Assembly: GCA_011109175.1 (NCBI GenBank)
Contig: RDEW01000037.1
Coordinates: 9,650 to 73,649, forward strand
DNA from: Dicyema japonicum
Taxonomy: Eukaryota; Animalia; Dicyemida
DNA: 64,000 nt
Direction: 5' to 3'
In this document: positions 1-47,053 of the stretch, piece by piece
Position numbering within the stretch: the stretch's first letter is position 1
Layout of the letters: each line of letters opens with the position of its first letter
Position numbers and translations under genes: made by a program
The notes under the pieces: generated by a model
Told to the model about the DNA's origin: nothing
The model's input: the letters and a program-made list of their open reading frames with translations, nothing else
Database searches by the model: none

Positions 1-14
1 TTTTTTTGTTTTTT

Positions 15-193
15 TGAGGGAACAAGGGACCGATCCTTCGACCTCTTCTATTTTCGACCATTTGCACGCTTAATCGCTTTATTGACTCAAAATAAATTTC
101 CCTGTTTTTTTGAGTGAACAAGGGACCGATCCTTCGACCTCTTCTATTTTCGACCCTTTGCACGCTGAGTGAACAAGGGACAGATCTTTCGAC
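15..193. repeat. Tandem 56-bp unit, about 2.5 copies; the first two copies are preceded by a T-run (A-tail on the minus strand)
   Basis: tgag(g/t)gaacaagggaccgatccttcgacctcttctattttcgacc(a/c)tttgcacgct at 15-70 and 111-166; partial copy at 166-193. Confidence 0.85.
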
Positions 194-344
194 GCAAAAC
201 TTAGTGCTTGTTTATGTTTTCAAATGATAAATTTGTCTTATCAACCCGGACAGTATCAACAGTCCGGATGCTATCACATACGACAATTAATAAATAAAAT
301 CGGTTCTAAAAAAGGAAGAGGAGACATTAGGGTGTTGTAGTAAT

Positions 345-1700
345 TTTCGGCCAGTTAAGAATTTTTCCATCTATAACATGATGTTCGGATGTAAATTTGA
401 ATTAAAGATATTTTTTGTTAGGAATGTCCTCGAAATAGAGTCAAAGGCTTTCTGTATATCGATAGACACCAGAACCGTCCTTAAGTGCGTCTTCATGTTA
501 AAGCCGTCTGTGATGAACTGAGAGACAGATCCCAAATGCGTTATTGTAGAACGTCCTTTTCTGAAACCATGTTGAAAATCGGGAAATTGTATACCAGGAG
601 AGATTAACATTAATACAAGCTTCTCCAACACTTTTGACAAGGCGCAAATTACGGAGACAGGGTGGTAAGAGGAATGTTTTTTGATTTAGGCTTGAGAATT
701 TGTGCAGTCAGTAAATTCTTTTATATATTTGGTATTTTTTATTAAAAATGATAAGGACAAAACATTAGTTTGGTATTTTATGGGATTTTATACAATAGTT
801 GTATAGCCTCGATAACACGATATATGCCTGAGGTCATAGGTTTTTGAGGTGAATAGCACAGACACCGCAATAGGCTCGGATGGGTCGTATAAATTTGATA
901 GTTTTTTTCACATTATAGGGAGTAAAGAATGCAGTATATGGCTTCTGTTGTGGACCACATCGCTATATGCAGAGAGCGAGAGAAATTCTTGTGTCTGATC
1001 GACACATGATATTTCATAAGAGATTTTTAAAGTTTACGTGCAGGTTCCGAGGCAATTGGGGTAACGACTTCACTCCGCCGCCATCTTCCATATAAGACTG
1101 TTGATATTTCTGTCTTCAAGAATGTGGCACAAAAGTTTTTTATGGCATAGTCGACTAACAAAACAGCTCCACTTATGTCTGTGGTTAGCACGGACTAGTT
1201 GAGAAATAGAGTGCGTATGGTCTATGTATAGTCATTTGCTTGTAACTGAGTTTTCTTCAGGGCATCCCTTTTCTCGATAAGTGCCAAGACGTGGAAAATT
1301 CTTGTAAGATGATAAAGGGATGAGCATTTTGTCAGCTTTCAGAATAACTGAAGTTAATATCTAAGGTTCACAGAATGTTCACATAATCTTATTTGGTTTT
1401 CCCTTAAATGAATCACATAGTACATCACAATTCCCTATTTCCATTAGGTTATCTGTATGCACTATTCACCGGACAGGGGGTGATGGACGTTGAGAATACT
1501 TTGGAAAACTATAACATTGAATGTAGTCATTGTCTGTTAAATTTGATGATGGAGGAAATAAGTCAGGAATTAGAATAAGTTATATGAACTTTCTCGATGA
1601 CAACTGCACATTGACGGACTCAAATATTTCTATCAATGCAAATACCAGAAATGACATAGTCGTTATAAACGAATAAAAATCAAATGTGCAAAACTTTAAA
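345..1700 (-). mobile_element. Degenerate Jockey/I-like LINE fragment (APE remnant plus 5' part of RT)
   Basis: ORF 371..640 has RT motifs QHGFRKGRST and VSIDIQKAFDSI; APE-like remnants near 1480-1570; boundaries approximate. Confidence 0.75.
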
Positions 1701-2699
1701 CTTTTGTAACGTTACATTTGTACTGCCAAAACATGAGAACTCAAATTGATATGTCGATTGAAGCATGCCATGCTTGGGTCAAAATCTCTGAATACATGTT
1801 ATGAAAAGATTAAAAAGTTCTTTTTCACAAGCTGAGATGACACCACCGTTGGAGATTTAAACTCAAGAGAACAGCTTTATTAACTCAACCAATATGGATG
1901 TTTGTAAAAAAATTAATAATATAGGATATATAAAGTCATTACTTTTTGGGTTGTTTGAAATATCCAATTATTTTACAATATTGAGACGACCACTGAATAC
2001 TATGTGGAGATTGGTGATGTTTTCCCTGAGTTATTATATTCCTTTTCATTTGGTTTATATGATAGGAAAATAACTATAACAATATTAATTATTTGCATGT
2101 CAATAACCTTTTAAATAACTATTTGGAACGCTCTACCAGGGAAGTTTGCATTTCAGCAATGACAGTGATTACGTATTATATCAAATGGAAAATCACAGAG
2201 AAAATTATAAAAAATGATAGAGGAAAGAAACTTTCTGACCCGGAATCAGTTTTGAATGTTATCGTCTCAGAGAATTATCTAGATGCTGGATCGACTATAA
2301 AGTTTTCCCTCCCGATAAGATCCGACGGGAAGTTGACTGAAAGAAAGAATAGCATACTTTCGTATAAAAAGCTGTGACCTGCCTTAGTATGTCCAGACCA
2401 TTTCAATAGTCCCTTATCTTTAATAGATGTGCCATTGAGTTTCACGGTCGTCATGGCTTCTGAACGAGGCAATACGTCCGAGTTTCTTGAGGAAGATCAT
2501 ATACTGCTTATCGCTCCGGTTGTCTTTACAGCAATCATCGGTGGAGGAGTCCTCTATACTTCTTTACTTTAGCTCTCTCTGCTTCTCTGTAGCGGAAAGT
2601 GCCGAAAGAGGGACAGAGTCAACACATGTTATATATCGAACTAACGGTTTCCCCTTTGAACGGAAATATATGAATTGTATTTTTTTGCAATTTATTTTT

Positions 2700-3030
2700 T
2701 ATTATCGAATCAGTAAATTTAAACAATAGAAGTCAGGTAGTTGCCGCCCTCACTGCGTGGCTGTTTCCTCTCAAAATTGCGAGCGAAATTCACGGAGATC
2801 ACTAGTGCATGAGGTGATCCGGTTTCCAAGACGTCCGAAAAACTCGAGTGTAGAGGGGGAGTAGGATCTGGAAGTCTCCATAGCAAGGGGAACAAATTTG
2901 ACATCATCGGGAAGGTCGACGTATTTAACGAGTTTGGCCTTCTCCGCCTTTACGGATGCTGAACAGGCCCTTGTAGCACTCTCGTGAAGATTTTTCAGGG
3001 CGAACGTGTCTGTACATGTCACATCCCAAA
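2700..3030 (-). mobile_element. 3' fragment of a CRE-like REL retrotransposon with A-rich tail
   Basis: ORF 2771..3022 (DTFA...A..KAEKAK..KY...FVPLAMET) matches the C-terminal endonuclease region of CRE-type elements; T-rich tract at 2679-2705. Confidence 0.7.
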
Positions 3031-4199
3031 CCAGTGGTTTCCCGGCCTCAAATGGAAATATGAATTGTATTGAAGAATAATATAGTTTGAGAAGATTAAA
3101 TTATTAAGCCAATAAATAAGAATTATCAGATTACTCTTTACAAGTTATTTACACCTTAAGATTTAAAGAAGACATTAAAATAATGAAAAAGGTTTTTCAA
3201 GCGTATTTGGAGACTATGTATGATGAAATAGTATCTGTAATAATATATATGAAGGATTAAGAAGATTATCTGCCTGGAAGCGAAAAGACCGGTAGTTAAA
3301 CTGAATAAGACAAATCTATGACTTAAATGAATGTCGAGTTATTAAAGAACAGATTGATGGATTCAGAAAGAAGCCAAATATCCATGAATCATAAGAATCT
3401 GAAATAATATTATGGAGAGAAAGTGCATGTGAAACATCTAAGGCATTAGTGTAGGACTCAGATAAAAATACTCCTTAGATATATCTCTTAAATTAAATTT
3501 CGATGTCGATCACCTTCCTCGTTATGTCCCACATAGCAACTAAATGATTCAAGATTCTTTTTCTACGGGATCTTCTCTTCAACGAGATCCTTGCAGTGTA
3601 TGGTTATATTGCTTCACTTATTCCATGCATTACAAGCGTAAATTATGACGTCTCTTATAATTATTTCTTTGCTTCAAATGAACCTTTTCTATTTTTGGTA
3701 AAAATGTGTATTTATTAAAATGTGATTTTAAATACCTTAGTACAGTCCGATCCCGTTTCGGGGCATTTTTCATTTGGAGTCTATTTTCCAGCATTAATTT
3801 CCAAATTTGGAAATTAAGAAAGTAGGAAAGTGTTGAACAGTTTCGAATTCATTCATGCTTTTTGGAATTGTCGACACTAATTCTTCATTGTTGAAAGCCT
3901 TGAAACATTTTTTTATTTGTATTTTCAATAATAAATGAGTTTAAATTGGCAGTTCAGGTCATATTTGAGCATATCATAGTAAATATCTGTCTTGAATAGT
4001 TTTTGAATTCTTTTTGCAGACGCTCTTGCATAGAAGCGTTTTATAAATATTCTAGCCCAATCGCCATTATAAACATTTTCTTCATTTGAAAAGTTACCAG
4101 TCGATGAATCTCCATGGAGTTTTTACAATTTTAGTCCATTTCTTTTTAGATTTTCCACGGCTTGCTTTAATATTATATTCCCTTTTCTAGAATCTTTCA

Positions 4200-4750
4200 A
4201 TAGTGTCCAAAAGGGAGAATTTTTTTCAAATTTACGAGCATTCTCCTGGTAGGCAAGAATCTCCTTTCCGAGGGGGTTTCCAGAAGACCTCTCCATTTTA
4301 GGAAGTTGTGTTTTCTGTCTGCGAGTATGACATTTATTGTATTCCTAAAGGATGTGGTAGATGTAATTATCTTATTTTAAGTAGGATTCGCAGGCACTGG
4401 TAAGAGTGTAATCCACGCCACACATGCATATTCGATTGTTGGTAGGATATATTGTTTGTATAATAATCCAAGGTGAGGAGAGAGGATATTGGGATCTAGC
4501 AAAGGTCTTGAAATCTTCGTGAAACTAATGTCTTCATGTGATGTGTGAACGTCATCAGAGGTTCGAATGTGATTCCAAAGATTGAGGGGTTCTTAAATAA
4601 GATAAGTTCTTCATTCCAAGTTAATTTAGGATCTAGCGACGTATGTTTCGTGTAGGAAGAGATAAACGACTTGCTTTAAACTTATATAACACGATTGCAT
4701 AACGTTTTCGAGAACATTCTGTCTTGGATAAAATAACAATATTGTTAATC
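4200..4750 (-). mobile_element. Decayed LINE RT C-terminal remnant ending at the hAT insertion
   Basis: Minus-strand peptides PTIEYACVAW (about 4400-4445) and NPSIFGITF (about 4565-4595) resemble the RT C-termini of other LINEs in this window. Confidence 0.5.
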
Positions 4751-4961
4751 ATTGCTAGGGCGAACTAAGTTTAAAAAGTTAAAATTTAATAATAGTAAAT
4801 AAATAATCATTAAAATGATTTTTAACTATATTTTATTATAAATAAATATATATTAAACAAAATTATTAGGTAAAAAAGTTAAATTTAAAATTTAAGTTAA
4901 AATTTAAGTTAAAATTATTTTAACCTTAAAGCAATAAATACTTTTACTCAACTTATTAAAC

Positions 4962-5402
4962 ATGCAACGTGCTTTCGATTCGGTGGCGTTAAACCTCTCT
5001 CGAGTTGTCAAAAATGTTGAAAGGAAAAAAGGAGAAGGGTCACTTGCGTTACCTGATGGTATGAATGTAATTCATGCCATATCCGAGAACGTTGTGACAG
5101 ATGATCCAAAAGAATGGGCGAGGCAGGTAGTCCTGCAGGTACGTAGCAGGCTATCTCGAATGCCCTGGAATGGTTGGCCATACTTGGCGGAGCTCTGCAG
5201 TGGCAGATTCAGTACTGCTATATCTGTGAGTGAACTCAAGAAGATGGCTGTAGGCAAAGAGGGTACTGGTCTAAAGGGGCGGGGACCAGGTGACCACAAC
5301 TGTCAAAGAGAGCACGAGCACCAGAGCTGTGATACGTTGCAGCTCAAGCATGTTTATGAGGTTTTCGCGCGGAATCTCGCTGCAGCGGCAGATGTCCGTA
5401 TT
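4962..5402 (+). mobile_element. N-terminal segment of an R4/Dong-like retrotransposon ORF, inside the hAT element
   Basis: WARQVVLQVRSRLSRMPWNGW matches the N-terminal motif in ORFs 26136..26324 and 28892..29161. Confidence 0.6.
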
Positions 5403-5799
5403 TGATCCAGATTGTTGGTAATCCCTCTTCTCTTAGAATAAGAGTGTGCCATAACCTCCCTGTTACTCCGCATCTTTACATCAGATTCAGTCAAAATATC
5501 TCCGTTAGAGTCCAGTGGGCTGTCCTCACGGCATGCCAGTTCCACAAGTTGTGAGGTAGTAAAGGCGTACTCTTCATCGTATACCTTCATCTCATGCTTA
5601 TGTTCAATGAGCATACTTTCGAGCGTTCTCTTCAGCACAACCGATTGGATGTAAGTCCTTGTTGATTCTTCAATAGATAATTTATCCATATGATTCTTGA
5701 AGCATCTTGAGACAACTCCATCCCATGTCAAAACCACTGGAATAATCTTCACTTGGCATTCATAGAGCAGCGAAAGTTCATTTGCTAGCAAGTCATATA
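5403..5799 (-). mobile_element. C-terminal fragment of an R4/Dong-like element, near-identical to about 23001-23392
   Basis: YDLLANELSLLYECQVKIIPVVLTWDG...GITNNLD; nucleotide match to the 22994..23884 ORF end, lacking the 3' UTR. Confidence 0.9.
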
Positions 5800-7599
5800 A
5801 CAAAACATCAAAATTCAATGAGTTTTGCGAAATAACGATTATTTCTTGTAGATTATCTGACCGAATCGCACCAAACACACATTGACCGATATTCCAAAAA
5901 TGATGATTGGGTTCTACAAGTAACCAGAGCATTCATAAAATCTGATATTCCACTAAACAAACTATCTATGCCGTGGCTTAGAGAATTGTTTTACGGAGGC
6001 ACTGTACGAGTTCCCTCACCATCAAAAGCTAGAAGCTGTGTGGATCAAATCATAATGGATCAATAATTGTTAATTCAACAAAAACTTGTGTATAAAAATT
6101 TACTTTATTTTGTAGCAATCAAAAAGTTTTTCCTATTACGGATGAAACAAAAATCCGGGGCCAAAGATACGTTACTGTGATGATTGGATCGTTAAATTCT
6201 CCTGAAACAACATATCTGATATCGTTTAAGGCGATAGAATCTGCTCCTAACAAGAACATCATTACTCAGTCGACGATGCACTTGGAAATAATTTGGTTCA
6301 AAGGGAAAATTTCCTTTTGTTATTTTCGGATGCTGCAAATTATATGAAATCAAGTAAAATTTTATGTTTTAGCTGGCAAAATACTTAAAAATCTTTACCC
6401 CAAGTTATTCCATGTCACATGTGCCTCTATTACACAATTGTTGTGAGAAAATAAGAGACTCTTATCTGGAAATTGATTTGATGATAGCTACTGTACAAGC
6501 AACAATTAACAAAAACAATAGAAGAAAACTAATATTCAAAAACAGAAACATCGCCATTCCACCTCGAGTGCACTTGACAAGATGGGGGACCTGGCTTAAG
6601 GCCGCTACACACTATTCAGAATATCTGATCGGAGTTCAAAATATTTTTGAATCATTCACGGATGATGGATATCTAGTTTGAACAGCTAAAGAAAATCTTA
6701 AAAACCACGTGTTAGTTAGCAGTCTATGTGATTTTATCCGAAGCTATTCAAACATTCCAGGTTTCCGAATAATGTAGCTATTGCAGATATTATTAAAAAA
6801 TTTGAAAGACACGCTTCACAACTGAACAAACATATGATAGTTTAGAATCGTTGGAATTTGGAAATGACAACAAATTTATTAAAGAATACAAAAATAAAAG
6901 GCTTCAAAACAATGATATTTCAGATATAATGAAAATGAATAATTCACATATATCTTCTGCCGACTATTCATTACTCCTGAATTGTCAGCCTACTTCGTGC
7001 TCGATTGAACAATGTTTCTCTGAGATTAAGAATTTTATAAAATCCAACAGACATTTTCTTCCAGGAAATTTAGAAAATTATGTAATTTGTATGTGTAACA
7101 AAAAATTTTAGTGTTTTTATTGTTTAGTTATAAAGTTAAATTTTTGGGTTAATTTTTTTAGTTTTTAGGTTAATAAAGTTAATTTTTTAGGTTAAAATAT
7201 TTATTTTTTAGGTTAAAAAAAATTCGCCCTAATCATTGCTCTTCAGCTTTCCATGTATTCAACAATTACTGTACATTTATTTTACAGGTGGGCTGTAGTT
7301 TGATGATCTGATTTATTCGGAAATGAATTTAAGTGCGGTTATTTCAGATAAGATAATTGGTTTTGAAAATATTACAAATTAATGGTTAAACTATTCTAAT
7401 ACAACCCTATAATCGTAGTTGACTATAAAGATGTTTATTGAACTTTAGATACCAATGATGTGAACTTTATATAAAACATAATGGTTTCCACTCATAAAAA
7501 ATAATCTCTTCAAAAAGTCAGAGGAACATTAGCTGCAACTAACATGCTTAATTAAATTTAATACCTTTTTATGTTTTTCGATTATTCGTTACAAAGCAT

Positions 7600-10500
7600 T
7601 TGCAACTCGAAACAATAATCTTTCCACTTTTGTTTGCTCAGTATCAGAACACGAACCCAGTCAAGATCCTCACCATCTCTGAGGCATCCCTAAATCATTT
7701 GAATTTTTCATGGTTACATTGGCAAAACTCAACAAAAGTTGCCATCTCGTCTCTAATATTTCCCCAGGAACTGCGAAAAAGCCACTGAAAATCTGAGACA
7801 ACGCTGGTCATTATTTACAAAACCCAGATGATAAAGCAAACCATATTGCCAAACACTTCGAGGCACAATTTAATTCAGTTGGGGTGAGAATATACCTAAA
7901 TTTATTGGAAATCCAAGAGCTCTTGCAAAAGAAATTACAATAAAGGAACTAACAAATATATTCATGCACCTAAAAGGCAATCGTTCAGCTGGCTAAGATG
8001 GGATTCCGGGCGAGTTACTAAAACATGCTCCGGTTATTGTTGGGAATATAATCACGGATATATTAAACGAGTCGATGGAACTTCACTGTTCACTTCTATA
8101 GGACATGGAGTCTTAATTCCGATACACAAACTTGGGAAAAAAGAGGGATCGGTGGATGGATTAAGCCTATTATTCTACTGTCAACTATCAGGAAGACATT
8201 ATCGATCATAGTGCTTAACCGTATACGAGAGCCAGTGGAAAAATACCTTTCCCAAAGTCAAAGTGGGTTTAGAAGTGGAAGGTCTACCTCAGATATCGTG
8301 TGGAATCATCGATGGCTTACATCAATATGTCAAAACTACAGAAAGTCATCTACATCCTATGATTTAGTTAGTTAGTTAAGAGCTCTTTCGCGTGGCCCTA
8401 AAAGGGGTTCGCTTGAGCCATGTTTTGCAGCCATCCTCCTCGCCATCCTCGCCCACGCCATCTTGTTCCTGGCCCTCATTCGAACATCATCCAGATCGTC
8501 CGCTGTCACCAATTTACGACTATTTTGTTCGTAGTCATCTTTTAAGCAGGTTGGAAGTGTGTCTCTTGGTCTGCCTCGAAATCCGCGACTTCCGGCGTAG
8601 TAGAAATATTCTTCCAATATTCTGTTACATGGCGTAGTCGGGTCCAGTCTGAGGATATGTCCAAATAGTCGCCATCTCGATAAAATAACATCGGTGCTGA
8701 GTGGTCTGGATTTACATTGTGAATATAGATTTTCATTAGAGATTTTTCTCGGCCAGAAAAATTCTAATCTACATGCGGAGTTGGTTCCTGTGAAAAGTAT
8801 CTAGCTTCTCTAAATCAATTTTAGAACATGCCCATGTTTCGGAATTGTATAGCAAAATTGGTTTAACAAACGTATAGTCTGATACGAAGTTTCAGTGATA
8901 CATGTTTTTTCCTTATCCAAATTTGGTACATTTTTTGAAGTATATGGTAGCCAGCATTTTCCTTCGACAAATATCCTCAGCATCACCTAGCAGTGAGCCG
9001 AGTTTTTTGGTATGTCTCCAGCACTCATCGTTCCTTGATTCTGCTCGTTCGACTCGTGTATAATCAGTTTTTTTAATGTTTATGCGTAAATCCCAATTCT
9101 TAAAAATACGTTCGGCTTGAAGTAAAATTTGGTCAAGTATTTCTTGGTCGGTAGACACAAAGTCTACATCATCCGCATAAATTAACTCTGTTATGTCCCG
9201 GTATTTAGGACCCATGACATTTCTCAATTCCTTGAGTGCAGCTTCGAGGTAAACAATAAATATAATTGGGGACAAGGAATCTCCTTGTGGAGTGCCCATG
9301 TTGGTACTGAAACTCTTCGAATGCTTTGTTCCTATTCTCACGGATAGGTCAGTTTCGGAAAGTAATAAACTTATTAGTCTCAGGCAGTCCTCGTCAAGCA
9401 GTTCCTTTAGAACAATCATGAGTTTTTCTCTATTGATGCTGTCAAAAGCCTTCGTTAGATCAATTCCTAAGATGTAGATTACTTTCGTGTATTTTTGACA
9501 TATTGATGTGAGCCATCGATGACTCCACACAATATCTGAGGTTGATCTTCCACTTCTAAACCCACTTTGACTTAGGGAAAGGTATTTTTCCACTGGCTAT
9601 CATATACGGTTAAGCACTATGATCGATAAGGTTTTCCTGATAACTGACAATAAAATAATAGGTCTTAGTCCGTCCAACGACCTTTCTTTTTTCCCAGGTT
9701 TATGTATTGGAATTAAGACTCCATGTCCCAAAGGAAGTGGACAGTGAAGTTCCATCGACTCATTTAAGATATTCGTGATTATACACATTTATTAGAATTT
9801 GAACTTCCCAGTTTCGAACGTATTTCTTTCTGCTGCTCAGACAATTCTCGAATTAAGGGGTCATGAATCATTCGTCTATTTTGGTCTTTTTCCTGGTATC
9901 TAACAGTCTCTATCGCCGACAGTTTTAGAATATCCAAAATCTTCCCGAGGTCAGTCGAGGGGGTGCCACTGGGTTCAACTCACGTAAACGTTTAGAGACA
10001 TTTTGTTGGTATCTCTTTTGCCAAGTGTCAAAAGTCAACATTTCCACAGCCAAACGTCTATTTAGAGGTGTGCTTTTCCTCTTGACTGCCTCAATTCCGT
10101 AGTATCGTTTGAGATTTAATCTGGCCACCGTTAGCTTATGGTCACTGTCAGTAGTGGTTCTTCCATAACTCCTAGAGTCAGACAGAAGTCTCTTCAAGGA
10201 GATAGACCAGATAATGTAGTCTATTTGGTTGAATATGCACGTGTGTTCGTCTTTGGATTTTCTTATGCCAACCCAGGTAGTTCTATGTTTTGCTGGGTGT
10301 TTAAAAGTGGTATTGCATAGATACAGATTTGATGAATTACAAAAATCCAAGAGTGAGTGTCCAGTAGAGATTACGATACCCTCTGCCATATTTTCCCATA
10401 CAGACTTCGTCGTTCCTTCTCATGCCAGCCTTGGCATCCTAGTCACCACAGATAAATATAAGTGCAGATCGATGAACTCGCATATATGTATTCGATAGGA

Positions 10501-40702: not shown

Positions 40703-41830
40703 TTATTGTCGATTCCTCGAATCATCCCCAATGTATGGGTTAGTTCTTCTCTGTTCCATTTTAAAAGGATTTGTGACAATCTCATACGAAGGGGGTTTAT
40801 GGAAGTTTATTGATTGATTATTGAGTATTGAATGAGTATTTGCGATACATGTTGACTGGTCATTGAGTAGTGGAGGTGTATTTGCAGGAAATAATGACTG
40901 GTCATTGAGTAGTGGAGGTGTATTTGCAGGAAATAATGACTGGTCATTGAATAGTGGAGGTGTATTCACAGGAAATAATGATTGGTGATTGAGTAGTGGA
41001 GGTGTATTTGCAGGAAATAATAACTGGTTATTGAATAGTGGAGGTGTATTTACAGGAAATAATGATTGGTCAGGTGTATTTGAGTGGTCATTCCATAATG
41101 GTTGATCATTCCAAAGAGGATCAGTTTGTTCATTAACTATAACAGCATCTGATAAATCAATGAGTGTTGATGTCTTTTCATACTCAGATTTAGAAATAGC
41201 AATAGCTTTGTCCAACATTTTATTTTCCTCATCCAAAGCAGCCTCATATTGTTTGGCCTCATTAATACTAATCTCCATAACCATTTGTATTTGTTTTTCC
41301 TCCTCTTCCACCGATGAAGGAACTGATAACTTTGATACATTCATCTTGGAAATACGAGAGTTATTACTAGCAACAGTCTTTCTTGTATTTATGGCATTTG
41401 AACGTACGTCCATCAATTTATCAGTGTTCTTTAGTAGGGAACAAAGGTAGTACACTTTGGACTTGATATCAAATCCTTTCTCACTTGCAGTCTCCAAATT
41501 CCACGGAGAAACCAAATCCTCTATTTGACTAAGGTTCTCGATACATCGACTTGCCACAAACTGAGACCCTGTAAGAACAATATATGTTAACAAATTCAGA
41601 GTTTTGTTGATTCTATGCCAATTCTTGTTATCATCTGTTATTATTTTCCATACTTTTGACATTATTACATCCAATAAGGCAGAGTCATCTGTCATATCGG
41701 CAATTTCTGACATTAGTGAACTAGAGGCCATCCACGGATCTTTAGAAGTTGCCTCTCTCATCTTTACCTTCGCATTGTTTACCTTTGAATTTCCTGACAA
41801 TAATGATGTTTTGCGAAGAAGGCTACTCAT
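40703..41830 (-). CDS. Epsin-family protein (ENTH domain, two UIMs, 14-aa repeat block, NPF-like motifs); no intron seen
   Basis: KMREATSKDPW, LMSEIADMT, KNWHRINKTL; UIM-like EEEKQIQMVMEISINE and EENKMLDKAIAISKSE; TNPF and TNPY; start placed at the MSSLLRK methionine by analogy to known epsins. Confidence 0.88.
   Translation of the reverse strand: MSSLLRKTSLLSGNSKVNNAKVKMREATSKDPWMASSSLMSEIADMTDDSALLDVIMSKVWKIITDDNKNWHRINKTLNLLTYIVLTGSQFVASRCIENLSQIEDLVSPWNLETASEKGFDIKSKVYYLCSLLKNTDKLMDVRSNAINTRKTVASNNSRISKMNVSKLSVPSSVEEEEKQIQMVMEISINEAKQYEAALDEENKMLDKAIAISKSEYEKTSTLIDLSDAVIVNEQTDPLWNDQPLWNDHSNTPDQSLFPVNTPPLFNNQLLFPANTPPLLNHQSLFPVNTPPLFNDQSLFPANTPPLLNDQSLFPANTPPLLNDQSTCIANTHSILNNQSINFHKPPSYEIVTNPFKMEQRRTNPYIGDDSRNRQ
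40854..41072. repeat. 42-bp coding tandem repeat, five copies plus a partial
   Basis: Unit gactggtcattgagtagtggaggtgtatttgcaggaaataat, encoding variants of QSLFPANTPPLLND. Confidence 0.95.
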
Positions 41831-41927
41831 AGTTAACAAACAAAACAAGTATTTCAATCAATATTTAAATTATTATTTAAATACAGAATATCAATTATTA
41901 GAATATTTTATATAAAATTATATTTTA

Positions 41928-43382
41928 TAGCCCGGTGGTATAGTGGTTAGGTGTCGAGAGTCTGCCGTTATTATAATATGAATGATAGAGTCGGGGTGTT
42001 GCATCTGAAACTGGATGACCTCAACTCGTCGAAGAAATACCTAACAATAATAAACGTTTACACCCCTCACAGTGGATGGCTTAATAAAAACCCTGAGGAG
42101 ATTGATGACTTTACACCAGTCCTTCTGCCGTCTTCTCCAAGTATGCTTTCTCAACATTAGTAATGATCGCAAGAGACCTAAATTCGAAAGCTGGAACCCA
42201 GGTTACGACCGATGAGATATTTATGGGAAGGCATGGTAGGGGGAAAAGAAATCTCCCGGGAACCCTACTAGCTAACTTCTGTCAAACGAACAACCTATTT
42301 TTATGTAATACAGCCTTCATGCATCCAGCCAGACATAAATCTACGTGGTCGGGACACAGAAGGGCGAGTGATAAATATGTACAACCAGATCGACTATATC
42401 ATATGCAGGCAAAAAGATCGAGGGATTATACTTGATGCACGAGCTTATGGTGGATCGATTATCGACAGCGACCACAAAATGGTTATTGCTAGATTTTCTC
42501 CTAAGAGATTTATGGTACTACAAAGAACGAAATGGAAGAACATTGAAACCACAGAACCCAACTCTAGACGTTAAAACTTGGAATCTTAATTGGACAATCA
42601 GAAGGGGCCATAGCATTCAAAGAATATTTGGATGCAGAACTAGAAAACATGCCTACAGATTTGCCGCACGGAAAATCCTGGGATTTTGTAAAGCAGTCAA
42701 TACAAAAAGGAGTAAATCTGCATCTATTGAAAGAAAATGAGAAAATCGCACAATGACATGTACACGGTGAAGGACCTTGCCAATAAACAGAAGACCATAT
42801 GGATGCTATATCAAAATACTGACGATTCGAACGTAAAATCAAATTTGCGGCTAGAAAGAAAAACTATCAATGCAAAAATAAGAAAAACTATACGGCAGAA
42901 TAACAGAAATAGAGCACTGGACCAGATTAAGAAGATATAATCTCTCAAGGACAACGCTAAATTCTACGAGGATGTTAAACATATAAAAGGAAAGAGACCC
43001 CATCAACCGATAATGATAAGAGATGACAAAGGAACGCAGGTTGTGGACCAAAGGGAAGTGGCGGAAATTATCGCTGCCCATTTTGGAAAACTTTTCAATC
43101 CAAGAACGACACTATCATCCTAGAACGAGAAAAATTGGATGAAGAAATCTCACAATATGAAATTGAACTCACGAGTTCCAAGTTGAAAAACAACAGGACT
43201 CCTGGCCCTGACGGTCTCGGTGGCGAATTCTTCAAATATGGAACCCAAAAGCTGTATGAATGCATCGCTAGGATTCTGAATGAATAGGAGGAAGTGGATG
43301 AAACTACCAGTGATTTGCTAACTCGTGTTGCACATGCTTTGTCAAGTCCTATGACATAACGGTAAGTGCTAATAATAATAAA
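41928..43382 (+). mobile_element. RTE-like LINE (partial APE, start of RT, then tail) preceded by about 27 nt of SINE-A head
   Basis: INVYTPH, RDLNSK, NQIDYI, DSDH, KNNRTPGPDG; tail ...aagtgctaataataata near 43365-43382; gcccggtggtatagtggttaggtgtcg at about 41931-41958. Confidence 0.75.
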
Positions 43383-43476
43383 AGACCAGGCCTTCTGGCT
43401 GAACGTAACATCTGAAGGTAGTGGGGTCGAATCTGAAAAATGAAGTTTTCAACGAAGGTCAATTCTTGTAAACAGA

Positions 43477-43659
43477 TTACACCCATGAGGCAACAAGTCC
43501 TCCTGGCACGACAAAGTAGTTGAAAGGGATCCTACTACCATCTCCCAACCAAATTCTCCGGACAAGATAATGAAATACTTCAGCAACATTTTTATATGGC
43601 ATATAAAACATGTGTGTTCCTCGCTCTTTTCCCATTAACCCAAAGTAAGTTGTTTTCAT
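43477..43659 (-). other. Short ORF resembling the proline dehydrogenase C-terminal motif (uncertain)
   Basis: YFGLMG...FYMPYKNVAEVFHYLVRR resembles PRODH YFGQLLGM...KYVPYG.V.EV.PYL.RR; no upstream exons could be assembled. Confidence 0.3.
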
Positions 43660-44380
43660 GGAGAACCAGTGACATCCTCCAACAAGGATTCACACTTTAT
43701 CATAATTTATTTCTGATGGACTCAAAAATCCCAAGTAAACATAAAGAATGTTGCTTTTAAAGTTTATCCAGACAGTTGTTCGACAAGATCTGTTCGACCG
43801 ATTAATCAGTTGGTTGGAGTTAATCGATTGACTGAATGTACTGAAAGTCACTCAGTACGTTATTAAATTGACGAATTCTACATCTTCCTTGACAAGAAAT
43901 AAATTATTGTGCCCAACCAATGAGAAGTCGTAAGGATAAGCCAAGCAAGTCATTTTTCTTTGGCTTAACCCCACCGAATCCAGTTGAGTTATCGCTGTGA
44001 ACGTCCTTTTCAGGCTATTACTTTCCTTTTAGTGGCTGGACATAACTCAAATCTTTAATTATCAATAAACTAAGACAATACTTTGCCGCAATGAAGCATT
44101 GTAACTTGTGTCCTGATTAAACAGAATTGAGTTTAATGACTGTGGTTAATGAAACTAATTTTAATTAACCTTTTTCAACAAAAAAGTTTATTACTGAATA
44201 AAACATATATTTGAACACTTAAAACTCATGTTAACTCAACACAATCAGGATAAACTTTACTGAAGTATCGTAACTTATTTCTCTCATTTGAGTGATTCCT
44301 AAGGTGTAACGTGAATGATCACACAGAATTCCCAAATTTGTATATCAGAAAAGTTAAATATAAAAAATATATCCTTAATA

Positions 44381-45406
44381 TTAAGAAAAATTATTAAAAC
44401 ATTTATCAGACCCAAGAAAACGGAGGACACGTGCAACAACTTGTGTTGGTAAAAGACTAATAGTGATAAAAAGCATACTAAAACAAAGGAATTATCAATT
44501 TGAAAATATTTGGAATAATAATTTCACTTTTCTGAGTGATAATGCCATCATAAATAGTAATAGCAGTTTCTTCTACCTTCAATGGAGGTGGAAATGGTGG
44601 ATGTCTATATATTATTATTATTGTCACTTTGCTGAGTCAAACATCCCCGTTCTAATCAAATAGGGACAAACTAATGTAAGGGAAATGACATTCTCCAATT
44701 CTTGACAGACTAATTCTGCTTTAAGAGAGTTGTGTAGTCCGATAAGAGATGATTTGCTTGCAGAGTATGCAGATAAGTGACACATCCCACTATACCCAAG
44801 CAGACTACCCATAGTGACCACGTGACCAGATCCACGATTTATCATAAAAGGTAGGAATTCCCCAATTATCTAAAATGCCAGAAATGACCTACTAAGAAGT
44901 GTGCCATTACATTGACATCAAAAATATGTTTAACTAGACCAAAACACGTGTCATCAACATAATGAGGATATACTACAGCCGCGTTGTTTATTACAATATC
45001 AGGAACACCCAGAGTTTCTATAATCTTATATAAATCAATTACAAACATTTTTGCATGTAATTTCTAACTTGGTGTGGTCGGCCAAGTCCACGTGGTAAAG
45101 AAAGACGGAAGACTCATAATAATCAATTCCTTTGCAATCAGTGATTAGTTTTACGGTGTTTTGTAGTCCTTTAAAGTCAATATCCAACAGAATAAGAAGA
45201 GATCCATTTTTTGCAAATAACAAAGAAAGTTCTCGTCCTAAACCATTTGCTATGGATTTTATTTTTATATTACCAGCCCCTGTTAGTAGTACAAGTTTGT
45301 TTGTCACGTGCTTTCTCGTGAGAAAATAATCATTTGTGAGAAAATTGAAAATTGATGAAGCAACAAGCTTCAAGACATCACAAATGAGGGAGATTACCTC
45401 AAACAT
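44381..45406 (-). CDS. Short-chain dehydrogenase/reductase, SDR16C (retinol dehydrogenase-like), about 303 aa, intact after splicing five introns
   Basis: TGAANGLG (after splicing), NNAAV, catalytic S and YSASK, VCPY.IRTGMF; introns 45250-45273, 45025-45046, 44870-44892, 44605-44627, 44457-44478 give 912 coding nt. Confidence 0.92.
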
Positions 45407-45475
45407 ATAATAATATTTAATTTTAAATAATTTTAAAATATTAAAAAATTATATCTCCAAGTAAATTAACAAATT

Positions 45476-47053
45476 ATGATTTCGTTTAACATTCCAGACA
45501 GGTATAAATGATATTCAAATAAAAGTAACTTTACGAATGACCTCGACGCTATTTTTTACTGTGTGATAATTCTGAGTGTTTTTGCGGGGACTTTTTCAAA
45601 CTGGAAATATCAGAAACGCTGTGGCAAAAGTGTTTTCGACACTACTACTATAATAAGATGGATTATATACGTGTCTAGTGCCCTTGGAAATTTTATGTTT
45701 TTAATGTTACTATCATTGTTAATACATGTGCTAACAAACAAGGTAGTTACTGTGCCTATATTAGTACGATCCCTCATATTTAGAGGATAATATCAAAACC
45801 ATCCTCTATATTTCATTTGGAGGGAATGTTATCGCAATGTTGAACATTTTATATGAACAGACTGAAGTAAGGAACATTCTTCATCGATTGGGAGAAACCC
45901 TACAAAAATCTACCCGTTTCTGTTTGGAGAAAGAACTTTCTGGTAAACGAATGGAACGAACTTATTAGTAAAAGGAGGACAAGTCTAATTGTGAGAATTA
46001 TGGGAGTAATTATATTTATTATATTCTAGACATTAATAATATTCCAATATATCTGCTTTACTCCTAATACTGTCAACTTCAAGACAAACTACAATATGAC
46101 TCTGAGTTGTGTCAACATGGTTGAAAAGAATCCCAGTTTCATTATGGGAATTACCATTCTGGCTTTTATTTTCATTCTCATTGGTTGGTTCTGCTTTTAT
46201 CCCAGGAATGGTTCAGTTAATCCTTAACTTTTTCATTATTGAGCGATTCTTCACTCACCCAATTCTTTCGTATATCGATCTTTGTTCTGTCTCAAACATT
46301 AGTGTCCTTATTATGAAAAACAGTTTATACGGATATTACATTCACGGAAAATCTATTCACGGAAGCTCTGATACGAATATGCAAGGGCTTGCTCAACAGT
46401 TTGAGAACGAACAGGTCCCTTTGTTGATTTACTTTCAGAAAGATCTTGTCTCACAAAGGGGACTTGTGGGTAGTAGTGATCTCCAAACATTTGAAGTCAT
46501 TCTAAATGAAAAGGCATACCAGCAAATCATCACAGTTTATGAGAAACAGGTGGAGGACATGTTATTATAGAATCTATCAAACTCTACTGACAGGTCCAGA
46601 GTTTATGAAATAGGAGATGAACTTAATTATTTGTTAACTCAGTTTTTCAGTCATGTTTTGATTTTGAGATATTAATTAGAGTTTGCGGGGGGCTGACTTT
46701 ATAATACAAAATAAGACTTTGCCAGAAATTTTGTTAAACTATGAAGTAACTGAGAATTTAAACATTTCCACGTTATATCAAGGTTAGTTTAGGTTTTTGA
46801 ATCATAGATCCTCGACAAACGTTTACAAAGTCAATTCTTTATGGAAAGTCCATTCAAATTTTAGTCTTTGAAACAATAACAATTTCGTTTTTGGTGTATC
46901 TTGGGACTGGTTTCGAGTTTTCTTTGATTTGTACGTACATAATTTCCCAAGTCTCTGTTTTTTGTAGTTTAGGTGTTTGTCAAAGTCTTTGGGGCCATCA
47001 GCAGCCAAAATCTTGTCAGAAAAACCTTCGTGGACAAACGATTTTTGATTTAA
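45476..47053 (+). CDS. TMEM67: Meckelin (TMEM67/MKS3) homologue, transmembrane and cytoplasmic half only (about 455 aa); nine introns; one apparent +1 indel near 45870
   Basis: FFIDWEKP, PVSVWR.NFLVNEWNE, IDLCSVSNISV, YGYYIHGKSIHG.SDTNM, SQRGL, QNLVRKTFVDKRFLI*; introns 45502-45525, 45743-45764, 46006-46029, 46184-46205, 46415-46438, 46550-46570, 46655-46679, 46783-46807, 46951-46972; start codon less certain. Confidence 0.88.

Follow-up and report, generated by a model that had tools for sequence, protein, structure and literature searches.

Can an animal rely on a Meckelin that has lost its whole extracellular half? A gene of the ciliated dicyemid Dicyema japonicum raises this question. No gene is mutated in Meckel-Gruber syndrome more often than that of Meckelin (TMEM67/MKS3), and many of the mutations that cause disease affect the ectodomain or the surface where it meets the membrane domain. 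The gene described here belongs to the known Meckelin family, and what is new about it is that an ectodomain-less copy is the only recognisable one in the genome. It lies in a 64-kb stretch of contig C301, which is referred to below as the window.

The Meckelin (PF09773) gene occupies positions 45476-47053 on the forward strand and is interrupted by very short introns (Table 1), a feature also described for the published Dicyema japonicum assembly (PMC6736024). Its ATG (45476-45478) is preceded, three codons upstream, by an in-frame TAA (45467-45469). On the other side of a 69-bp spacer lies the ATG of a divergently transcribed short-chain dehydrogenase (SDR) gene, which is N-terminally complete and has an adh_short (PF00106) match of 44.6 bits on 44624-44845. 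Both the spacer and the window as a whole are free of N, and the spacer may be a bidirectional promoter shared by the two genes. A mis-join within it is unlikely because the N-terminus of the SDR is complete, because a proper Meckelin ATG is followed by a normal 24-nt intron, and because no orphan ectodomain exons were found elsewhere.

Table 1. Features of the Meckelin locus, with positions in the window, and loci of other transition-zone genes, with the contigs of the assembly that carry them.
Feature	Position or contig	Strand	Evidence or remark
SDR (short-chain dehydrogenase) gene, 5' part	44624..45406	-	ORFs; ATG 45404-45406; divergent neighbour
SDR intron, stopless, in frame, 24 nt	45250-45273	-	removal restores TGxxxGxG motif (read from sequence)
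AT-rich spacer between divergent start codons	45407..45475	.	69 bp
Exon 1: ATG, MISFNIPD + 2 nt	45476..45501	+	only ATG leading into exon 2 via 24-nt GT-AG intron
Intron 1, 24 nt (GTATAA...AAAAG)	45502..45525	+	ordinary intron
Exon 2: short acidic N-terminal tail, TM1, basic loop (KYQKRCGK), TM2	45526..45742	+	PF09773 345-415, 33.3 bits
Intron 2, 22 nt	45743..45764	+	ordinary intron
Exon 3: TM3, end ...NILYEQTE	45765..45866	+	weak alignment to HMM positions 584-610
Frame-break segment, 28 nt, GTAAGG...GGGAG	45867..45894	+	encodes (G)TFFIDWE in downstream frame
Exon 4: KPYKNLPVSVWRKNFLVNEWNEL... + start of TM4	45895..46005	+	PF09773 / 7FH1 / own HMM alignment
Intron, 24 nt	46006..46029	+	ordinary intron
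Exon 5: rest of TM4, loop, TM5; poorly conserved	46030..46183	+	hydrophobic stretches read from sequence; HMM placement weak
Intron, 22 nt	46184..46205	+	ordinary intron
Exon 6a: best-conserved block (ERF...DLCSVSNISV...GYYIHGKSIHG..DTNM)	46206..46414	+	PF09773 128.6 bits; own HMM 150.5 bits
Stopless in-frame intron, 24 nt (GTCCCTTTGTTGATTTACTTTCAG)	46415..46438	+	GT...TTTCAG bounds exact
Exon 6b: KDLVSQRGL...QTFEV..., start of cytoplasmic coiled-coil region	46439..46549	+	own HMM
Intron, 21 nt	46550..46570	+	ordinary intron
Exon 7: coiled-coil region	46571..46654	+	HMM placement weak
Intron, 25 nt	46655..46679	+	ordinary intron
Exon 8	46680..46782	+	HMM positions 864-895
Intron, 25 nt	46783..46807	+	ordinary intron
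Exon 9: TM6 + start of TM7	46808..46950	+	PF09773 752-798; HMM 900-943
Intron, 22 nt	46951..46972	+	ordinary intron
Exon 10: ...NLVRKTFVDKRFLI then TAA stop (47051-47053)	46973..47053	+	PF09773 801-825; HMM 946-970
B9-domain loci, three	C367, C290, C46		genome profile search
TMEM231	C323		genome profile search
TMEM216/TMEM17-type (Transmemb_17) loci, two	C360, C112		genome profile search
CC2D2A	C68		genome profile search

Family membership was established exon by exon. Collinear exon matches of 33.3, 37.0, 128.6, 16.9 and 17.1 bits (curated cut-off 25 bits) cover positions 345-825 of the 825 in PF09773, and a scan of the whole genome with the same model gives 136.2 bits at this locus. With our own HMM of 970 positions, built from 38 full-length Meckelins that an exhaustive protein search had collected, the gene takes up positions 493-970 and nothing earlier. 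Against the chain of human Meckelin (PDB 7FH1), exon 2 aligns to residues 534-580 (positions 498-560 of our HMM), the piece 45871-46005 to residues 636-646 and 662-691, and exon 6 to residues 746-846 with E = 3e-19. Seven hydrophobic stretches can be read from the exons, with a coiled-coil region before the last two helices. The human and Dicyema proteins thus have in common the membrane domain, the coiled-coil region and a C-terminal ...VD.RFLI, which in Dicyema reads ...TFVDKRFLI. They also share the motifs FFIDWE.P, VS.WR..F..NEWNE, DLCS.SNISV and GYYIHG.S.HG. An exhaustive phmmer search of protein collections with exon 6 returned no match above 55% identity. Among 36 Meckelin membrane halves, 31 columns are conserved in at least 90% of the sequences, and the Dicyema exons keep 29 of these, among them all 13 columns that are invariant. 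This degree of retention implies that selection acted on the truncated Meckelin for a long time.

The nine ordinary micro-introns (21-25 nt) all keep the frame, and there is no stop within any exon. One of them is itself free of stops and in frame (46415-46438); if read as coding it would insert eight residues, VPLLIYFQ, which are absent from all homologues and from 7FH1. The predicted product would be about 446-455 aa long. A model of ~455 aa had been drawn in the first-pass annotation, and its two ends stand, namely the start just before TM1 (by about 15 residues in that model, by about 20 in ours) and the KRFLI terminus. Its total of 455 codons (454 aa) does not, since it depends on splicing out 45867-45894 and includes the intron at 46415-46438 as coding sequence.

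The segment 45867-45894 is where the frame fails. Read in the frame of exon 4, these 28 nt encode (G)TFFIDWE, continuous with KPYKN..., and the FFIDWE.P motif is encoded perfectly at 45874-45900, one nucleotide out of frame with exon 3. In the assembled sequence FFIDWE is therefore out of frame, unlike in human Meckelin. The human sequence VFFIDWERP aligns at this segment, and the alignment to our HMM resumes from position 614 with 42.9 bits; exon 3 aligns up to position 610 with the frame offset by one base, and a TAA stands at 45868-45870 in the downstream frame. Among 36 homologues, at least 92% conserve each of the residues F, D, W and E of the motif. We searched for canonical splicing (GT/GC-AG introns of 15-60 nt, in combinations of up to three) that would keep FFIDWE in an open frame and found none; every open model removes exactly the 28 nt 45867-45894. 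Introns with AT-AC ends were rejected, as the only solutions are long and implausible and delete TM3. Programmed +1 ribosomal frameshifting at GUA-AGG-A, considered from the sequence alone, found no support and is hardly credible. Since no canonical splicing retains FFIDWE, the assembly must carry a 1-nt frame break at about 45864-45874. The published assembly is a haploid merge, and the heterozygosity of the sample is 1.24% (PMC6736024). The perfectly intact FFIDWE codons argue that the break is either artefactual or very young.

On balance we favour a working, membrane-only Meckelin in which the frame break is an assembly artefact or an allelic indel. The break before FFIDWE would then be an assembly error, an indel of a minor haplotype, or at most a very recent change. 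This functional reading is weakened by the fact that the assembled frame is broken and that no canonical splicing preserves the motif. Ranked second, and in our judgement unlikely though not negligible, is a recent pseudogene: a truncated gene that had worked for a long time would have acquired a real, unspliced 1-nt frameshift at about 45867-45872. Translation would run for about 150 residues, comprising TM1-TM3 and an out-of-frame tail, as far as the stop at 45966, and Dicyema would be losing Meckelin. Such a loss agrees with the stop that is reached when the sequence is read without splicing here, and with the state of the locus, which is single copy, with no second haplotig or paralogue in the assembly, so that the only assembled copy carries the break. 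The genome of Dicyema japonicum is, moreover, strongly reduced, with gene loss ongoing (PMC6736024). However, the break is the only lesion in about 1.4 kb: no exon contains a stop, the micro-introns are all intact and 29 of the 31 near-invariant residues are kept, FFIDWE included. Pseudogenisation would consequently have to be very recent. The presence of other genes of the MKS module also speaks against it. If the gene is nevertheless a fresh pseudogene, a multiciliated animal does without Meckelin while retaining the rest of the MKS module.

A real frameshift could also be bypassed by a new 28-nt intron, 45867-45894. The product would have about 446 aa and lack FFIDWE, and would equal the model of the first-pass annotation minus the intron at 46415-46438. 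No other route leads from the assembled sequence to an open frame; the segment begins with a strong donor, GTAAG, and its length lies within the range reported for dicyemids (median 27 bp in Dicyema sp., PMC6543705). The intron would, however, delete the F, D, W and E that nearly all homologues conserve. Its acceptor would be GAG, whereas the other introns of the gene end in TAG, CAG or AAG and are 21-25 nt long. Furthermore, since the FFIDWE codons are intact, the segment cannot have been drifting as an intron for long. We regard this solution as improbable.

In human Meckelin, the cysteine-rich domain (residues 37-280) contains 11 disulfides, and the beta-rich domain (281-515) contacts the membrane domain (7FH1). 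The Dicyema gene, unlike the human one, lacks both of these domains and the signal peptide, i.e. about half of human Meckelin and two of its four dimer-contact zones. For neither the signal peptide and cysteine-rich domain nor the beta-rich domain did the searches give a match, whether at the locus itself, in the rest of the window, in its flanks or across the genome. A six-frame hmmsearch (--max) of open stretches of at least 12 residues, covering the 64-kb window, C301:1-9649 (which includes 4.2 kb of N) and two 10-kb downstream stretches, returned only noise outside the gene (E > 0.4, at most 6 bits), and hence no ectodomain exons within ~55 kb upstream or in the scanned downstream DNA. The PF09773 scan of the whole genome detected no second locus besides the Meckelin gene, and an ectodomain-only profile (A1, 36 sequences) gave no candidate in the whole genome at E up to 10. 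The ectodomain is thus absent at the locus. This bears out the proposal of the first-pass annotation that the gene lacks the whole extracellular half and represents a minimal membrane/cytoplasmic Meckelin, with 69 bp to the divergent SDR start codon and no room for ectodomain exons: PF09773 matches begin at 345 and those to our HMM at 493, the locus encodes the membrane and cytoplasmic half only, and the spacer shows no trace of ectodomain exons.

Could the ectodomain be encoded elsewhere? It could lie in exons on the far side of the SDR gene, in a gene of its own (a split Meckelin), in a gap or behind a mis-join, or be too diverged to be recognised. Profile searches of the whole genome miss exons that score below about 20-30 bits. 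As a positive control, a membrane-half profile (A2) run over the whole genome recovered exons of 149, 47 and 31 bits and missed those of 15-17 bits, so a strongly diverged ectodomain in small exons could escape. Gaps make up 4.1% of the assembly (PMC6736024), the 4.2 kb of N falls within the first 9.6 kb of the contig, and rearrangement has been reported for the somatic genomes of dicyemids (PMC6543705). Against this stands the strength of the signal that should have been seen. Full-length homologues held out for calibration have an ectodomain score, in bits, of 0.32-0.74 times that of their membrane half; given about 255 bits for the Dicyema membrane half, an existing ectodomain would be expected at 80-190 bits, and nothing rose above noise in the 55 kb upstream. 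Only 69 bp, free of gaps, separate the Meckelin ATG from the complete N-terminus of the SDR gene, and an in-frame TAA precedes this ATG. Where introns measure 21-25 nt, one of at least ~1 kb with a complete gene inside it would be exceptional. Neither the profile nor the six-frame searches found an ectodomain that would point to a split gene or to upstream exons across the SDR gene. We consider an ectodomain encoded elsewhere slightly less probable than the new intron. We conclude that the ectodomain is probably absent genome-wide, the profile searches reaching exons of ~30 bits or more. Because it has vanished without a trace, its loss is not recent. Together with the retained residues, the absence of stops from the exons and the frame-keeping introns, this points to long purifying selection on the short gene.

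What such a gene would do depends on the host. The first-pass annotation had considered an aciliate myxozoan, in which Meckelin would have a non-ciliary role. This has to be abandoned, as the host is Dicyema japonicum, and dicyemids are covered with ciliated epidermal cells (PMC6736024). A survey of transition-zone genes found the MKS module, represented by three B9-domain loci, TMEM231, two loci of the TMEM216/17 type and CC2D2A, all on contigs listed in Table 1. In a ciliated host with these genes, a transition-zone role is expected for Meckelin. Genome-wide searches detected neither Tectonic (PF07773) nor the GON domain of ADAMTS9/20 (PF08685); both were run without a positive control, so these absences are only hints. 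The assembly contains a single Wnt gene, and one Wnt-domain gene has been reported for Dicyema japonicum (Lu et al. 2019, PMC6736024). When the ectodomain was lost, its extracellular partners in the system (Tectonic, GON-type ADAMTS and most Wnt ligands) may have gone with it. Meckelin, TMEM67 and B9 go unmentioned in the supplement to the genome paper (Lu et al. 2019, PMC6736024), and we found no paper linking dicyemids with Meckelin.

For a working membrane-only Meckelin we propose the following arrangement. The gene would encode the sole Meckelin of a ciliated dicyemid, which has lost the signal peptide and the cysteine-rich and beta-rich domains and would retain the seven-helix membrane domain, the cytoplasmic coiled-coil and the C-terminal tail. 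TM1 would act as an uncleaved signal-anchor, with no need for a signal peptide. According to the positive-inside rule, basic loops stay on the cytoplasmic side of a membrane. In Dicyema the tail before TM1 (about 20 residues) is acidic, with D residues, and the loop after TM1 (KYQKRCGK) is basic, which by this rule suggests that the native N-out topology is kept. The dimer would probably form via membrane-domain contacts, which are one of the four dimer zones in the human structure (7FH1). The short protein would fill the place of Meckelin in the MKS module of the transition zone, together with the B9 proteins, TMEM231, TMEM216/17 and CC2D2A. The extracellular Wnt-receptor function would have been dropped, with no arch left for Wnt5a. 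The topology, the localisation and the function, as well as the nature of the frame break, are what we infer from sequence. Tentatively, and with rather less confidence than we have in the gene being functional, we suggest that the only Meckelin of Dicyema is natively a membrane-plus-coiled-coil protein and that its transition zone is built without the cysteine-rich and beta-rich ectodomains. If this is true, the animal provides a natural experiment showing that the transition-zone role needs no more than the membrane and coiled-coil half, and it offers a minimal Meckelin of ~450 residues for structural and rescue work.

The nearest functional parallel is found in mammals. Cleavage of mammalian TMEM67 by ADAMTS9, around residues 331-343, yields a C-terminal product (delta-342) that is the form present at the transition zone and suffices to rescue ciliogenesis, and uncleaved TMEM67 serves Wnt signalling, roles that were assigned to the two forms in 2025 (PMC12119803). 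The delta-342 form resembles the Dicyema protein in being a Meckelin without the Wnt-binding N-terminal part, and the Dicyema gene would, if functional, provide a genome-encoded equivalent, reduced even further, of this ADAMTS9-cleaved ciliary TMEM67. The two differ in origin and extent. The mammalian form arises by proteolysis, starts at F343 and retains the beta-rich domain, whereas the Dicyema gene starts roughly where the beta-rich domain gives way to the membrane domain. The functional reading is weakened here too, because the cleaved mammalian form still has a beta-rich domain (343-515) that is missing in Dicyema.

Other short Meckelins provide a second comparison. Most of those in databases are partial models of full-length genes (Apolygus, Branchiostoma, Ciona), and they were rejected as a known class of short Meckelins. 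In the rotifer Adineta steineri, a predicted Meckelin of 473 aa (CAF0721030.1; P0149) begins some 10 residues ahead of TM1, spans HMM positions 492-970 and contains every conserved block, and there are no ectodomain exons in the 6 kb upstream. It is a paralogue located about 6 kb downstream of a full-length Meckelin of 989 aa, so the rotifer keeps an ectodomain-bearing copy, whereas no second or full-length copy is detectable in Dicyema. The transcript-like Logan contig SRR32906212_18717 (P0062, L010) has an ORF of 486 aa that spans HMM positions 499-970; two codons ahead of its ATG there is an in-frame stop. As an mRNA-like sequence the contig documents an ectodomain-less Meckelin, which may be one isoform of a gene that also makes a full-length product. 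The paralogue and the contig suggest that ectodomain-less Meckelins arise repeatedly; what is special about Dicyema among them is that no full-length copy is detectable. The N-terminal tail encoded by the Logan contig is 41 residues long and Ser/Thr-rich, and the contig has 39% identity to Dicyema exon 6. In the Dicyema tail, the stretch ISFNIPD of exon 1 resembles the V.F.V.Y pattern; this stretch is very short, and at most the last beta strand may survive in it.

The Meckelin gene of Dicyema japonicum was compared with two other Meckelins that lack the ectodomain, one from Adineta steineri and one from a Logan contig. The short Adineta steineri gene, found in two assemblies, lies about 6 kb from a full-length Meckelin gene on one strand. 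The N-terminus of the Logan protein is a 41-residue Ser/Thr-rich tail immediately preceding TM1, with a stop two codons 5′ of the ATG.

Across the 55 kb upstream of the Dicyema japonicum gene, the sole unreadable part is a stretch within the contig's initial 9.6 kb (RDEW01000037.1, positions 1-9649), which contains 4,235 N and may represent an assembly gap. The whole genome does encode B9 genes, TMEM231, TMEM216/17 and CC2D2A; neither the Tectonic domain (PF07773) nor the GON domain of ADAMTS9/20 (PF08685) was detected in it, in searches run without a positive control. Loss of the Meckelin ectodomain may have been accompanied by loss of the MKS system's extracellular side.

The first exon of the divergent short-chain dehydrogenase (SDR) gene contains a micro-intron, removal of which turns TGAGNIKIKSIANGLG into TGAANGLG, the classical TGxxxGxG motif. 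The exon had no match in a Pfam search, probably because this intron was left unspliced. In this genome, ORF reading cannot reveal a micro-intron that lacks a stop codon and has a length divisible by three.

Coordinates of the features described, in the window and in the two compared sequences
Feature	Sequence	Position	Strand	Remarks
SDR micro-intron, 24 nt (GTAATATAAAAATAAAATCCATAG)	window	45250-45273	-	stopless, in frame; inside first SDR exon
Broken ORFs	window	42163-44400	+	non-LTR retrotransposon-like; by-eye reading of ORF translations
ENTH-domain (epsin-like) gene	window	40703-41857	-	PF01417, 83.7 bits
Full-length Meckelin gene, 989 aa	Adineta steineri CAJOBB010000171.1	1-3631		same strand as short gene
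Membrane-only Meckelin paralogue, 473 aa	Adineta steineri CAJOBB010000171.1	10001-11847		same strand as full-length gene
Meckelin ORF, 486 aa	Logan contig SRR32906212_18717	27-1487		transcript-like contig, Logan SRR32906212

Between the SDR gene and the epsin-like gene sit broken ORFs (for example ...PGPDGLGGEFFK...) that, judged from their translations, look like fragments of a non-LTR retrotransposon; two pieces tested against Pfam gave no match. In the epsin-like gene, near-perfect tandem repeats of the LFPANTPPLLNDQS type make up the C-terminal half.
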